Of a DNA stretch of 64,000 nt, positions 34,322 through 40,008 are shown one piece after another. The notes below the pieces were generated by a model, which saw only the letters and a list, made by a program, of their open reading frames with translations, was not told the origin of the DNA and did not search any database. Source of the DNA: Tetramitus jugosus. Taxonomy: Eukaryota; Protista; Heterolobosea. Positions within the stretch are counted from its first letter, which is position 1; each line of letters opens with the position of its first letter. Made by a program: the position numbers and the translations under genes. The stretch covers positions 434,001 through 498,000 of the forward strand of contig OW569349.1 of the NCBI GenBank assembly GCA_937625935.1. Direction: 5' to 3'.

Positions 34322-35761
34322 ATGGCAACTCAAGACCTTTCTCAATTGATCTCTAGACTCGAACAAGTCACCTCTCGTTTGGAAACACTCAAGGTTGGTG
34401 GTGGCTCCAGTAGCTCTGGTGCTTCCAACTCTGCTGCTTCTGTTGCTCCACAAGTTGCTGCCTATGACAACTATGTCAGTGAATACTTGCAACCATTCTT
34501 GAACACTTGCGACAAGATTGGTGCACCATTGGACAAGGCAAAGGCAATCATCCAAACTGGTTTTGCTGAAGTGAGAGCTCTGATTGATAGAGCAAGCAAG
34601 TCCAAGAAGCCTTCTGATGAAGAATTGGCTCCTGCTTTGGCTCCAATCTCCAAGGTGATGAATGATTTGCAAAACTTGAGAATGGACAACCGTCAAAGCC
34701 CATTCTTCAATCACTTGTACGCAATTGATGAAGGTATGAAGTGCTTGGCATGGGTATCCGTTCCAAACATTACTGTGAGCTATGTTCAAGGCATGGTTGA
34801 CTCTGCTCAATTCTACAACAACAAGGTGCTCGTCGAATTCAGAAAGAAGGAAGGTGGTGAGACTCATGTTCAATTCGTTGAACAACTCAAGCAATCCATT
34901 ACCGAGTTGGCTGCCTATGTCAAGGAGAATCACATGACTGGTTTGACCTTTAACCCAAGAGGAGGAGACTTCAAGAGCGCTACTGCTTCCGAGTCTGCTG
35001 CTCCAGCTACCTCTGCACCAGCTACTGCTGCCACCAGCACATCTGCTCCAGTCAAGACTGCACCTGCACCTCAGAGACCTGCTATGGGTGGTGACTTGTT
35101 GGCATCCATCAAGGCCAAGCAAGACAATGCTGCCTCTGGATTGTCCAAGGTGACTGATGACATGAAGACCAAGAACAGAACTGACAATGTATCTGTTGTT
35201 TCTTCATCCACCGCCACCAAGGCTACCGGTGTTGTTCCAAGAGCTACTGTCGACAAGTTCAACGGTACTCCAAGATTCGAATTGGAGAAGGGTGTTGGTG
35301 AGAAGTGGGTCGTTGAGTATCAAAAGAACAATAATGCTCTTCAAATCACTGACACTAACTTGAAGCAAAACGTCTATGCTTACAGATGCTTAAACTCTCT
35401 GATCACCATCTCTGGTAAGGTCAAGAATGTTGCCATCGATGGATGCAAGAAGTGCGGTGTCATTGTTGATGAAGTTGTTGGCTCTATCGAGTTTGTCAAC
35501 TGCGAGAGTGTTAAGCTCCAAATCAACGGAAAGTGCCCAATCATCAGCGTCGACAAGGTTGATGGCTTCCAATTGTTCTTGTCCAAGGACTCTTTGGACT
35601 CCAAGCTTGTTGCCAGCAAGAGTTCTGAGATGAACATTAATGTTCCATCCAAGACTGACGAGGATGACTATGTTGAGTCTGCCGTTCCAGAACAATTCGT
35701 CACCACCTACAACGTTGCTTCTGGCAAGTTCACCACCGAAGTCAACAGCGTTTTCATGTAA
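34322..35761 (+). CDS. CAP: Adenylyl cyclase-associated protein (CAP/Srv2)
   Basis: LISRLEQVTSRLE, FFNHLYAIDEG..CLAWV, SAQFYNNKVL, WH2 (LLASIK...LSKVTDDMKT), CARP domain (KWVVEYQ, SKSSEMNI, PEQF). Confidence 0.96.
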   Translation: MATQDLSQLISRLEQVTSRLETLKVGGGSSSSGASNSAASVAPQVAAYDNYVSEYLQPFLNTCDKIGAPLDKAKAIIQTGFAEVRALIDRASKSKKPSDEELAPALAPISKVMNDLQNLRMDNRQSPFFNHLYAIDEGMKCLAWVSVPNITVSYVQGMVDSAQFYNNKVLVEFRKKEGGETHVQFVEQLKQSITELAAYVKENHMTGLTFNPRGGDFKSATASESAAPATSAPATAATSTSAPVKTAPAPQRPAMGGDLLASIKAKQDNAASGLSKVTDDMKTKNRTDNVSVVSSSTATKATGVVPRATVDKFNGTPRFELEKGVGEKWVVEYQKNNNALQITDTNLKQNVYAYRCLNSLITISGKVKNVAIDGCKKCGVIVDEVVGSIEFVNCESVKLQINGKCPIISVDKVDGFQLFLSKDSLDSKLVASKSSEMNINVPSKTDEDDYVESAVPEQFVTTYNVASGKFTTEVNSVFM

Positions 35762-35810: not shown

Positions 35811-38351
35811 TTAGGCAATCTTCTTCAGTTCTTTTTTCAGCTTGTGAAGCAGCTCTTTGAACTCTTTCGTTTCTCCTTCCCTCAAATGGAACACGATGAA
35901 CAAACTCTCATCGATCGTCCTTTCAGCAAAGATTGCAAACTTCATGTTTCGTTTCGTCGAGATGCACTTGATCACCACCAGAGGTTTGGTAGCGATAGGT
36001 GTCACATGAGGAAGCTCCAACTTGTCAAACTTTTCTTGTGTTGGTTTCTCACCATTCATCTCAATCATATCCTGTTCTTGTTCTTCCAGTTCGTCAATAA
36101 TTTCCTTCATCAATATTTCGTGGTCTGTTCGAGCAGGACATAACTTGAAATGACAACCGAGACAAGCCAAGTTCTCACACAATATCGTCGTTAGTGTCCT
36201 GACAGCTGACTCGACGTCCTTGAAACGTTTGAACCATGAGGAGATCTCAAAATTCTCAATAACCAACTGTGCTCGCTTCTTCTCACCTTGCATCCATGGA
36301 TGCAACAGGATTTGATCAAGTGGCACTCTATCATCAGGATCAGAGCATAGCATTTTCCTAATGAGATCCCTAGCCTCTGGTGATACTCTGTCTGAGTCTA
36401 CGTAGCCATAGTTGATTGATTTAATATCTTCAAACATTTGTGTGACATCAGCCTCGTTGAAAGGCAGTCTGCCCGTCACAAAGCAATAAAGAATGATACC
36501 GGAGCTCCATGTATCAACCTTCTCACCAGAGTACACTTCTCCTCTAATTTGTTCAGGTGACAAATGATAAAGTGATCCAACGAGTTGTGTGCTGAACAGA
36601 TCCCATCCCTTTCTGAAGATACGTGCCTGTCCGAAATCGGTAATCTTCACGTTTCCATCATTATCCATGAGAAGGTTCTCCAAACGCAAATCCCGATGGC
36701 AAACACCCATATTGTGACAATAAATCAGACCAGTAATTAATTGGTGGAAATAGAAGCGAGCAAGTGGTTCGGGGAATGGTCCATTCTGCAAATGCTCATA
36801 CAGAGAACCACCACCACACAGCTCCATTTCCAAATAAATATGTAAATCATCCGAGTCTACGCTGTACAGTCGTACAACAGATGGATGTTTCAACATTTGC
36901 ATTGCCTGAATCTCAATATCCAACTGACTGAGCTCCGAAACATTGCCCTTCTTCACTACTTTGATGGCACGTCTAGAGTCGTCCTCTTCATCATCATCAC
37001 TCTCCTCATGCTTACCAGTCGGAGTAGAAGTGGTAGTTGCAGTGTTGTTGTTGTTTTCAGAGCGATCGGCAGCAGCAGCAGATCTAGGGCTTGTTACCTT
37101 TGCCTTTGCCCCTCCTATTGTTGTAGCGGCAGAGTTGCTACTGCTACTGCTATAATCCCTTTCATCATAATCAATCATCTCCGACTCATCAACAACCTTC
37201 TCTGCATACTTGACAATACCATAACTACCTTTTCCGAGCGTGTACAGCATTCGATAGTGACTGCAGACAATGTTACCATACAATTCATCATTGTTGTTAT
37301 TCAATTGGAATCTTCCCTCATACAAATTCAAAATCACATCGGCCAATCGGAAGAATTCAGACTTGGACAAGTAACCAGTGTCTGTCACATTGTACTCTTG
37401 CATAATCTTGTGAACTACATCATCATCCTCCTCTGGCTCATCAAACAATAGACCCGACAGATTGATACCATCTCTCTGAACAGCACGCAAAATAATGGAC
37501 AAGTCTGCTTCGGACACTGAATTGACTCTTCCAATATCAGCCAATTTAAACAACCATTCAATAAAGTGTTTCCTGTTCTTTGCACCGTACATTTCCTTGT
37601 TCAATGTGGGCAACAATGCAATCGTAATTTTGTTTCTCAATTGAAGGTGAATGTCCTTTGTTGATTTCTTGTTGTGACAAAAGAGTTTGGGAGAGTTGAA
37701 CATGGAGACGTAGCCATCGACAGGACTGACTGGAGCAGAAGTGGATGACATGGGTGATAATTGGGGTGCATAGAGATTGTTGCTGCTACCACCATTGTTT
37801 GTTTGTATCGTCAAATGGTGATCAGAGTCAGAGTCATGATGATGATGATGGTGATGATGATGATCCATGTCATTCAAGTGAGACGATGATTTAGCTTTGA
37901 AGAAGCGTTGAAAGAATTGAGGAGTTTCGCTCTGATGACTCGCACTCTGATGATAGTGATGTGATTCTTGCTTCATTGCTTGTTTTTGAATACTGTGAAC
38001 AAATTTTTCCATTTCCGAGTATTCTTTGAAATTGAGAGAACATGTTCTCTCTTGATCAAACTAAGATGGGTGTGAGATGGGTGTGTAAGAAAGATAAAGA
38101 GTGTGATTTGAGTTAGTTTCTCTCTGTGTTTGTGCTATTGTATGCTATTGTGTGATGACTCAAAGACAATCAAAAAAATGATGATGACAAATAACAACAC
38201 ATACATGATAGAGAGTGGCAAGTGAACATAGCATGGGAACGTCACTTGTGTGGGTATCACTTAACAAAATTTCTTGCAAATTGACACGGCCACACTTTTC
38301 CTTATCCAATTGTTCAAAAACTTTACGTGAAGTTGTTGGTGTATTTCCCAT
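35811..38351 (-). CDS. EF-hand / CIPK(SNF1)-like Ser/Thr kinase fusion; exons 38351-38205 and 38060-35811
   Basis: Phase-0 intron 38061-38204. MGNTPT N-terminus and four EF-hand-like loops, then a kinase domain (GKGSYG, AIK, HRDLRLEN, DFG, SPE, DTWSSG) and a KA1/CIPK-C-like tail. Confidence 0.85.
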
Positions 38352-38799
38352 TTTTTTCTAAAGTTTTGGTGTGATAGTGGTGTGAGTTGATTGGTGGTGG
38401 TGATGGTGGTGGAGTGAGTTTGTGGTTGGTTGTTTTTGGTTGGTGTCTTTTCGATGGAAAGTTGTGGAAAGCTTTTGGTAGAGAGCGCTGTATGAGATGA
38501 ACAATGCTACTTGTTGGCTTTTGTTGATGGAAGTGGTGCTTGATGCAAAAAAATAATTAGTTTGGTTGTTGTTTTGTTGTTGGTGTTGTTCTCGTTGTTG
38601 CTTGCAGAAGCTTTAGTGTGAAGATCGTGTGCGAGCTCACAAAGCTAACAAAAGCAGAACAGGCTCGAACGAGATTGAGGTCACACAATAATACACGTCG
38701 TACTTTTTTGTTGAAGGAGAAATCGAGGACTCCAATAGCACATCTCCATCGCGTGTGATGTGTTTTGCGGAATGGACAGTCTGTGAAAAGATCAGATAT

Positions 38800-40008
38800 C
38801 TACGAACATTTGAACTCGCTTTTTTTATTCTCCATGTCAAGCAACGTTACACACTCGCACCATATCCAAGAGTACCACTTGTGCCAACTAACTGAATTGA
38901 GTAACACCTTTTTGTACAGATAATCAGAGTCTATGAACCAGATATGATACCAGATTGTGTCATACCTGCCAGAGCTCGAGAGGAGAATTTTGATGCTCAA
39001 TGTCAGTAACTTGAAGTATTCTTTGAGAGGTGTGTCAACTTGTCCAGCTACGGAATTATTAACGGTATGGTATTCAGAATGAATTAACTGTTCCTCTAGT
39101 GTTCTCATGTGCTCTGTAAATCTTCCACTCACGAGTTCGATCATTACGTTAAGTTCATCGCTAACGGCTGATTGATGATTGTTGACCCTTTCTACGCTCA
39201 TTCTATTTACAGATTCAGATAGAGTTTCTTGAGGCGAACTAGACTTAGTAACACTGGACCTCTCATGTTCTGAGTATTTCTCTTGTATTTCCTCTAGAGC
39301 AAGCGATAACTCGTCATTATGGTGTGATAGATACAAGTTTTCGGATTCAATATTACTTAACGTTTCTCGAAGTTCATTGATCATGAGTTCATTGGCGAAT
39401 TGTTTCTCGTTCCAATAAATATTCAATGATTCTAGCTCTCTTTGGTATTCAGAGAGAGTTGATTCTAACTCTGTACAGGAGTTATTCTTCTCATCAAGCA
39501 TTTCTTCAAGATGAGAGTATTTACTTCTCAGACTCTTCATTGTCTCCCTTGCAGAATCGAGCTGTCCTTGAAGCTGTTCATTCTTCTTCTGGAACTCTAG
39601 AATCAACAGTTCATTTTTGCTTCTTTCTTCCTTCAACCACACAACATCTTCTTGGCACTTGTTTAGCTCACTTCTCAATTCTGCCACATTTATCCAAGAG
39701 GAGCTATTGACTTGATCCAAAGCGAGTAAGGCCTGCTTTGTTACCAAGGGTTGAGCCAATTCACTGAATGTTGATACAGGTGCTTCCTTTGTCGTGATTT
39801 GTTTCTTCTTGACATGAACACTCTCCAACAGTTGTTTCAAGCCCACATTTTTCTCTTTCAACTCTTCATTCTCCTCCTTGAGGGTCTTCACGAGCTGAAT
39901 CAGTCCTGTTGAGAATTGAATTGCCTTGAAAAAATCATCCTTTGAGAAATCGAACTGAGAGAGATCAAAATCTTCTTGCATCCCCTGGTTTCCGAGCCAA
40001 TTTTTCAT
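38800..40008 (-). CDS. Coiled-coil hypothetical protein with Trp-rich C-terminal domain
   Basis: 402-aa ORF with a long heptad E/K/L-rich region and C-terminal WYHIWFID..LY..V....VSWHKWYSWIW. Confidence 0.7.
   Translation of the reverse strand: MKNWLGNQGMQEDFDLSQFDFSKDDFFKAIQFSTGLIQLVKTLKEENEELKEKNVGLKQLLESVHVKKKQITTKEAPVSTFSELAQPLVTKQALLALDQVNSSSWINVAELRSELNKCQEDVVWLKEERSKNELLILEFQKKNEQLQGQLDSARETMKSLRSKYSHLEEMLDEKNNSCTELESTLSEYQRELESLNIYWNEKQFANELMINELRETLSNIESENLYLSHHNDELSLALEEIQEKYSEHERSSVTKSSSPQETLSESVNRMSVERVNNHQSAVSDELNVMIELVSGRFTEHMRTLEEQLIHSEYHTVNNSVAGQVDTPLKEYFKLLTLSIKILLSSSGRYDTIWYHIWFIDSDYLYKKVLLNSVSWHKWYSWIWCECVTLLDMENKKSEFKCS

Follow-up and report, generated by a model that had tools for sequence, protein, structure and literature searches.

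The routes by which eukaryotes are usually said to turn a Ca2+ signal into phosphorylation are CaM-CaMK, CDPK/CCaMK, CBL-CIPK and the proposed SCAMK. In the CBL-CIPK system (SnRK3; plants and some protists) a myristoylated sensor with four EF-hands serves a CAMKL kinase with a KA1-like regulatory domain, while the CDPK/CCaMK kinases hold EF-hands and Ser/Thr kinase in a single chain, in the order kinase, junction, and C-terminal calmodulin-like or visinin-like domain. A further set of kinases (SAD/BRSK, MARK/Par-1, MELK, Chk1, and AMPK alpha) combines a CAMKL kinase domain with a C-terminal KA1 fold. The gene considered here lies on the minus strand, between positions 38351 and 35811, of a 64,000-nucleotide stretch of DNA from the soil amoeba Tetramitus jugosus (Heterolobosea; contig OW569349.1), referred to below as the window. 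It is a two-exon, single-copy gene of a conserved family whose members start with a myristoylation motif, continue with two EF-hand pairs that a disordered spacer keeps apart, and end with a CAMKL kinase and a KA1 domain; on this reading, taken together with the mode of action proposed below, we put a probability of roughly 0.6. The gene is expressed, and the family is apparently undescribed: no paper describing it or its motifs was found in the literature.

With SAD/BRSK and the other KA1-bearing CAMKL kinases the protein shares the kinase domain and the C-terminal fold (Z 10.6-12.9), and KA1-mediated autoinhibition and binding to acidic lipids, as in those kinases, are probable by analogy. 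Unlike them, the family has no UBA/AIS segment, carries Arg at position D+2 of the catalytic loop, and has its own invariant activation segment; its N-terminal module of four EF-hands with a myristoylation motif is found in none of SAD/BRSK, MARK, MELK, Chk1, and AMPK alpha. The parts recall CBL-CIPK, with a putatively myristoylated four-EF sensor and a CAMKL kinase with a KA1-like regulatory domain, and the same logic here would amount to Ca2+ decoding at the membrane. However, they stand on one polypeptide without the NAF/FISL motif, a 14-residue EF1 loop or the FPSF motif, the kinases form a separate clade, and the EF module resembles calcineurin B or NCS proteins at least as closely as it does CBL. 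As in CDPK/CCaMK, EF-hands and Ser/Thr kinase share a single chain, but in reversed order, with a kinase of the CAMKL type, a long disordered spacer that splits the EF pairs, and a KA1 tail. The kinetoplastid SCAMK, which was proposed to be a fusion with a SnRK3-like kinase, likewise joins an EF-hand module to a kinase, has no exact NAF, and occurs in Discoba; its EF-hands are C-terminal, within the SnRK3 C-terminal region, and it is confined to the Metakinetoplastina (PMC5924475), whereas here they are N-terminal and the family spans several supergroups. EF-hands N-terminal to a kinase are also found in the Phytophthora EF-PH-kinase PITG_08008 and in apicomplexan CDPK7-type kinases (PMC3019232, PMC7909640); their descriptions set them apart by a PH domain between EF-hands and kinase, another kinase lineage, and no KA1. 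Finally, an MGN-type N-terminus with a myristoylation motif followed by four EF-hands is seen in calcineurin B and NCS proteins, but these are free-standing, measure about 170-200 amino acids, and have contiguous EF pairs, while in the family about 100-250 variable residues separate the pairs and the module is fused to a kinase.

The gene and its transcript

The earlier note, made from the letters alone, had joined a short reading frame to the kinase reading frame by a phase 0 splice. The gene model reads as follows:

38351-38205, minus strand: coding part of exon 1, 147 nucleotides, 49 codons (residues 1-49, MGNTPTTSRK...LATLYH), with the myristoylation pattern and EF-hand 1
38204-38061, minus strand: intron, 144 nucleotides, phase 0, GTATGT...CTAAC...TTAG
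38060-35811, minus strand: coding part of exon 2, 749 codons (residues 50-798) and the TAA stop at 35811-35813
38352-38602, minus strand: transcript-covered 5' untranslated region, 251 nucleotides

The splice is borne out by transcripts. Metatranscriptome contigs from three runs of three different studies (X7, X10, and X14) lack exactly the 144 nucleotides between 38060 and 38205, and the borders of their joint, CT..AC on the plus strand, are GT..AG on the gene strand. An environmental contig of the Joint Genome Institute (JGI), L001, 98.8% identical, aligns over 38599-38205 and then directly over 38060-35781, while a contig from a groundwater DNA run (X2) retains the intron and runs unbroken over 37872-38650. 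The intron has in-frame stops, and its CTAAC lies 51 nucleotides ahead of the 3' splice site. The RNA contigs, together with collinear orthologues, rule out a mis-joined gene model, and the splice evidence confirms that EF-hands and kinase are laid out in a single chain of 798 amino acids, as the earlier note had it. MGN is evidently the true N-terminus, because the 5' untranslated region contains no ATG and an in-frame TAG stands three codons upstream of the start. The joint at 38060/38205 is the only one reported on this stretch from RNA contigs, so the low-complexity parts of exon 2 remain in the mRNA; the possibility that the low-complexity insert in the N-lobe of the kinase is a missed intron was ruled out, as the RNA contigs run through it.

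The T. jugosus genome (26.35 Mb in 56 contigs) holds one full-length copy of the gene; all other matches are to the kinase domain only, at no more than 44% identity. The two exons were searched separately, with the database protein P0001 (796 amino acids, the product encoded on L001) as full-length stand-in. Its exon 1 part is identical to that of the window protein, while its exon 2 part shows three substitutions and two length changes of one residue each, five differences in all. Coding low-complexity tracts vary in length between strains: H9 in the window is H8 in P0001 (37836-37862), NN around 37050 is S in P0001, and two RNA runs have a 3-nucleotide insertion after 37042, all of these changes being in-frame.

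The protein family and its domains

A word-based protein search returned at least 44 database proteins (P0001-P0044) with the same architecture or parts of it, the full-length matches reaching E values down to 1e-254. P0003 has 53% identity over 99% of the query, and P0005 of Naegleria lovaniensis has 37% over 99%. Besides N. lovaniensis, the Heterolobosea are represented by Willaertia magna, Acrasis kona, and Percolomonas; further members come from Amoebozoa (Luapeleamoeba hula), Cryptista (Goniomonas avonlea), glaucophytes (Cyanophora, Gloeochaete), red algae (Galdieria, Rhodosorus, Madagascaria), and one unplaced eukaryote (Eukaryota sp. TZLM1-RC). With at least 44 relatives in several eukaryotic supergroups, the architecture is not a one-off.

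The N-terminal module contains the following elements:

38306-38271, minus strand: EF1 loop DKEKCGRVNLQE, residues 16-27, with 4 of 6 canonical positions
38057-38022, minus strand: EF2 loop DQERTCSLNFKE, residues 51-62, with Cys in place of Gly6
37940-37629, minus strand: His/Ser-rich variable spacer between the EF pairs, about residues 90-193, predicted to be disordered, with the H9 tract at 37836-37862
37628-37539, minus strand: conserved helices before EF3, LLPxLxKE...GRxxFxxWLFKL, residues 194-223
37538-37503, minus strand: EF3 loop DIGRVNSVSEAD, residues 224-235, with ligands absent at positions 3 and 5
37391-37356, minus strand: EF4 loop NVTDTGYLSKSE, residues 273-284

This module was aligned over 21 family members. 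Conserved throughout the alignment are M1-G2; F12, L15, D16, and G21 of EF1; the segment SLxTLYxFD running into EF2 (F50, D51, G56, E62); the GRxxFxxWLFKLxD helix leading into EF3; DGIDL; G277, L279, and F284 of EF4; and a long exit helix. The spacer is free to vary in both length and sequence. In an AlphaFold model built from the alignment both EF pairs reach a predicted local distance difference test (pLDDT) score above 90 and show the short paired strands typical of EF-hand pairs; the score falls below 50 over about residues 111-177, in the spacer, and a helix over P0001 residues 281-308 points towards the kinase. In orthologues Pfam places EF-hands above its cut-offs at the same positions, one pair at about residues 6-68 and the second directly before the kinase. 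The four EF-hand positions named in the earlier note are thus present, as two pairs. The window start MGNTPTT fits the N-myristoylation pattern G-{EDRKHPFYW}-x(2)-[STAGCN]-{P}, which keeps Gly2 a candidate for lipidation, and the pattern fits 24 of the 25 members that begin with MG. Members without an MG start look truncated or mis-modelled. P0002 (JGI, 692 amino acids), which begins at the first Met of exon 2, is one of several database models of the family that start from an internal Met and leave out the first exon or EF1, so that automatic annotation shows the MG start and the first EF pair less often than they occur.

Among solved structures, the profile of the N-terminal module finds its best matches in an ALG-2 homologue, calcineurin B, GCAP, NCS, hippocalcin, KChIP, and CDPKs, the last by their calmodulin-like domains. 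Its alignment with calcineurin B (E 1.1e-9) stays in register over the two halves and takes in the MG start. No CBL occurs among the best 60 solved chains. A word-based search with the same profile for free-standing relatives returned two family members only, which is a weak negative. The module is thus calcineurin-B/NCS-like in a broad sense only, and not demonstrably CBL, because CBLs are missing from the best profile matches and CBL hallmarks are missing from the module.

The remainder of the protein is made up of the kinase and the KA1 domain:

37259-36285, minus strand: protein kinase domain, CAMKL type, residues 317-641 (Pfam Pkinase E 1.7e-58 and structure profile search)
37202-36969, minus strand: acidic low-complexity insert, rich in Ser and Asp, about 78 residues long and retained in the mRNA; it lies between the Gly-loop hairpin and the strand with the AIK lysine
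36701-36675, minus strand: catalytic loop CHRDLRLEN, with Arg at D+2, which is Lys in other Ser/Thr kinases
36638-36549, minus strand: activation segment DFGQ...GWDLFST...SPEQ, almost invariant across the family
36272-35814, minus strand: KA1 domain, residues 646-798, with strand-helix-strand first, then an insert (helical/disordered) and three strands, and a basic helix at the end

The kinase retains the Gly-loop, the AIK lysine, the C-helix Glu, HRD, DFG, and SPE. A profile built from 17 family kinase domains was searched against solved structures, and the best 60 kinases were all CAMKL, with none of the CDPK or CaMK type: BRSK2 (234 bits), SNRK (232), MELK (231), Ssp2 (225), CIPK23 (224), SIK3 and SNF1 (223), CIPK24 (221), MARK (about 220), and AMPK (213). 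The label SNF1/CIPK-type, given to the kinase at first sight, is accordingly right at the level of the group. A scan of NCBIfam yielded only partial matches to bacterial kinase models, far under their cut-offs. In a small tree, whose CIPK references are two proteins from one grass and which was built without CDPK references, the family kinases form their own clade with full support (100 in the Shimodaira-Hasegawa-like approximate likelihood ratio test), which points to a monophyletic family; the clade stands in a polytomy with the two grass CIPKs, a CaMKK-like paralogue, and an AMPK/BRSK/MARK group. The two closest relatives have a shorter N-lobe insert, and Naegleria and Willaertia have none.

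All the motifs quoted in the earlier note, i.e., the four EF-like loops, HRDLRLEN, DFGQ, STQLVGSLYHLSPE in the kinase, and the LFIVFHLREGETKEFKELL tail, are present in the window protein. Those of the kinase had been called atypical; they prove to be signatures of the family rather than local decay. Position D+2 is Arg in 40 of 44 members and Lys in 70 of 71 non-family matches, and as three members have Lys the two residues look interchangeable there. In the activation-segment signature DFG..GWD.FST..GS..SPEQ, W138, D139, F141, T143, and P154-E155-Q156 are invariant and S153 nearly so.

The LFIVFHLREGETKEFKELL tail that ends the protein is part of the KA1 fold. A structure model of the 153-residue tail matches the KA1 domain of SAD/BRSK2 with Z 12.9 (root-mean-square deviation (rmsd) 2.2, 92 residues aligned), followed by SAD-B (12.7), Chk1 (12.0), MARK3 (11.3), the SOS2 regulatory domain (11.2), the C-terminal domain of AMPK alpha (10.9), and the CIPK14 regulatory domain (7.6). 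Foldseek ranks the KA1 matches of the model in the same way, and a sequence profile of the tail gives weak matches to the KA1 domains of BRSK2 and Chk1. By these matches the tail has the KA1 fold, much as had been surmised from the sequence. Pfam reports no UBA domain after the kinase in the window protein or in 10 relatives, and since the first KA1 strand begins only about 12 residues after the kinase HPW, the UBA/AIS segment is absent.

Origin of the architecture and its control by calcium

Two origins had been offered for this architecture in the earlier note. The one, a CBL gene fused ahead of a CIPK gene with subsequent loss of NAF, we now regard as very unlikely. The kinase is indeed CAMKL, with CIPK23 and CIPK24 among its good matches, the tail resembles the regulatory domains of SOS2 and CIPK14, the fold matches that tie for the N-terminal module include AtCBL2 (Z 6.0, rmsd 8.8), and in approximately unbiased (AU) tests a clade of the family with CIPKs is not rejected (p 0.54). 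But BRSK2, SNRK, MELK, and Ssp2 all outscore the CIPKs, and a clade with AMPK/BRSK/MARK, which is not rejected either, fits at least equally (p 0.68) with a larger likelihood gain; given the polytomy and these tests, a CIPK origin is neither shown nor excluded. NAF, whose canonical form the earlier note had rightly missed, is in no family member: the NAF/FISL model (PF03822) has no match in the window protein, in 10 relatives, or in the precomputed Pfam lists of the 44 family proteins, while the grass CIPKs P0048 and P0051 do have it. Neither Pfam NAF nor the regulatory half of a grass CIPK, used as queries, found a canonical CIPK in the same genome, but the controls likewise gave no match. 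The first EF loop of CBLs has 14 residues; that of the family has 12 in 21 of 21 aligned members. The FPSF motif is in no family member, the window protein begins with MGN and not MGC, and the best 60 solved chains for the N-terminal module include calcineurin B, NCS, and ALG-2-like proteins in place of CBL. Moreover, the family has members in red algae and glaucophytes, two lineages reported to have no CBL-CIPK (PMC4990929). The other origin, a CDPK/CaMK kinase whose calmodulin-like domain was moved to the N-terminus in the manner of the apicomplexan and oomycete kinases with N-terminal EF-hands, appears more improbable still. CDPK calmodulin-like domains are among the profile matches of the N-terminal module (E 3e-9 to 1e-5), and the nearest clusters in a feature search of the ESM Atlas are generic EF-hand kinases of the CDPK type; yet CDPK and CaMK are missing from the best 60 solved kinases, which are all CAMKL, the KA1 tail is a CAMKL feature, and there is no PH domain as in PITG_08008.

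A more serious alternative, though one that we still hold to be unlikely, is that the N-terminal module is a pseudo-EF-hand domain: Ca2+-blind, lipid-anchored, and structural or regulatory in function, with the kinase controlled by phosphorylation and by contacts between KA1 and the membrane. All four loops of the window protein are off the canonical pattern, its Pfam EF-hand scores are below the cut-offs that the orthologues exceed, and there is a precedent in PITG_08008, whose weak N-terminal EF-hands bound no 45Ca (PMC3019232), a warning for the weak loops found here. On the other hand, EF1, EF2, and EF4 keep oxygen side chains at most ligand positions (1, 3, 5, and 12, except for Cys in EF1), the EF fold is modelled with high confidence, and the module is 50% identical to that of P0003, whose loops are better.

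A canonical loop was scored at six positions (D1, D/N/S3, D/N/S5, G6, hydrophobic 8, and E/D12). Ten of the 20 other aligned members have at least one loop at 6/6, and in nine the best loop is 5/6. The deviations in the window are E3 and C5 in EF1, C6 in EF2, G3 and V5 in EF3, and N1 in EF4. By these signs EF3 (D-I-G-R-V-N...) is probably dead for Ca2+, and the Ca2+ sensitivity of the window copy, with all four loops eroded, is probably weakened and may survive only at EF1, EF2 or EF4, while in orthologues with canonical loops Ca2+ is probably the trigger. The term Ca2+-decoding, used in the earlier note, hence stands as a reasonable expectation for the family; it is doubtful for the window copy.

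Several points weigh against our reading of the protein as a membrane-anchored EF-hand kinase. Its four EF loops match 4, 3, 3, and 3 of the 6 canonical positions, which is the lowest in the family among the 21 aligned members, and the Pfam scores (EF-hand_7 E 8.9e-4 in exon 2; EF-hand_6 E 0.027 in exon 1) both remain below the cut-offs. The fold matches of the N-terminal module are generic, with a tie at Z of about 6 among S100, CaM, CBL2, and NCS (VIA-align) and Foldseek E values of 0.05 or weaker; the fold search therefore cannot separate CBL, calcineurin B, and NCS. The structure models cover the N-terminal module and the tail separately, so that interdomain contacts lie outside their scope. 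The canonical CAMKL T-loop position, three residues before Gly, is Gln in the subclade of the window protein; the red-algal and glaucophyte subclade has Ser or Thr there. Biochemical data on any family member were not found.

On balance, we favour an EF-hand-coupled CAMKL kinase that may work as follows. Myristoyl-Gly2 and the basic KA1 helix would tether the kinase to acidic membranes. KA1 restrains the kinase in SAD/BRSK, MARK, and Chk1, and it might do so here by analogy. As one long helix and a short linker join the second EF pair to the catalytic domain, this pair could pass on a conformational change: EF3-EF4 would relay a Ca2+-dependent or other change of the N-terminal module to the N-lobe. 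The invariant Thr of GWDLFST is the likely phosphosite of the activation loop and could serve as a phospho-switch.

Neighbouring genes and biological meaning

Two neighbours of the gene can be listed:

34322-35761, plus strand: complete gene for CAP (adenylyl cyclase-associated protein), with CAP_N E 1.9e-47 and CAP_C E 8.9e-55
38800-40008, minus strand: upstream neighbour, a 402-amino-acid coiled-coil protein with an ATG16-like match (E 4.5e-6, 27.4 bits, below the cut-off of 33.7)

The CAP and kinase genes are convergent, with stop codons 49 nucleotides apart; because the kinase transcript extends to 35781 or beyond and the two genes are covered by a single RNA contig, their 3' ends nearly abut or overlap. 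Elsewhere in the same genome there are other CAMK-type kinases, L003 (G000:C35:337399-341109), L004 (C17), and L005 (C14), in which Pfam finds Pkinase only. Going by motifs and tree position, L003 belongs with BRSK and fungal KA1 kinases, the tail of L005 is AMPK-alpha-like, and L004 looks CaMKK-like; a CaMKK-like kinase would be a candidate upstream activator.

As to its wider meaning, the family represents a further independent wiring of EF-hands to an AMPK-related kinase. Whether a fused CBL-CIPK-like decoder exists was termed a long-standing question (PMC5924475). According to published surveys, CBL-CIPK is missing from red algae and glaucophytes (PMC4990929), glaucophytes have no CDPK-type (CFK) genes, and a single red alga of the four sequenced has a CFK (PMC5482843), which makes the presence of the family there notable. 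Its spread, over Discoba, Amoebozoa, Cryptista, glaucophytes, and red algae, is wider than that of SCAMK. We tentatively suggest, as an idea with somewhat less than even odds, that it is an ancient, undescribed class of single-chain Ca2+ sensor kinases beside CaMK, CDPK/CCaMK, CBL-CIPK, and SCAMK, and one of the main EF-hand-coupled kinases of red algae and glaucophytes. With its eroded loops, the T. jugosus copy allows a natural comparison of Ca2+-competent with possibly Ca2+-blind orthologues. If its members are Ca2+-regulated, the family would partly close the gap in those lineages for which CBL-CIPK is reported missing, and would provide a compact system in which to study a kinase under the joint control of a lipid anchor, an EF module at the N-terminus, and a KA1 domain.

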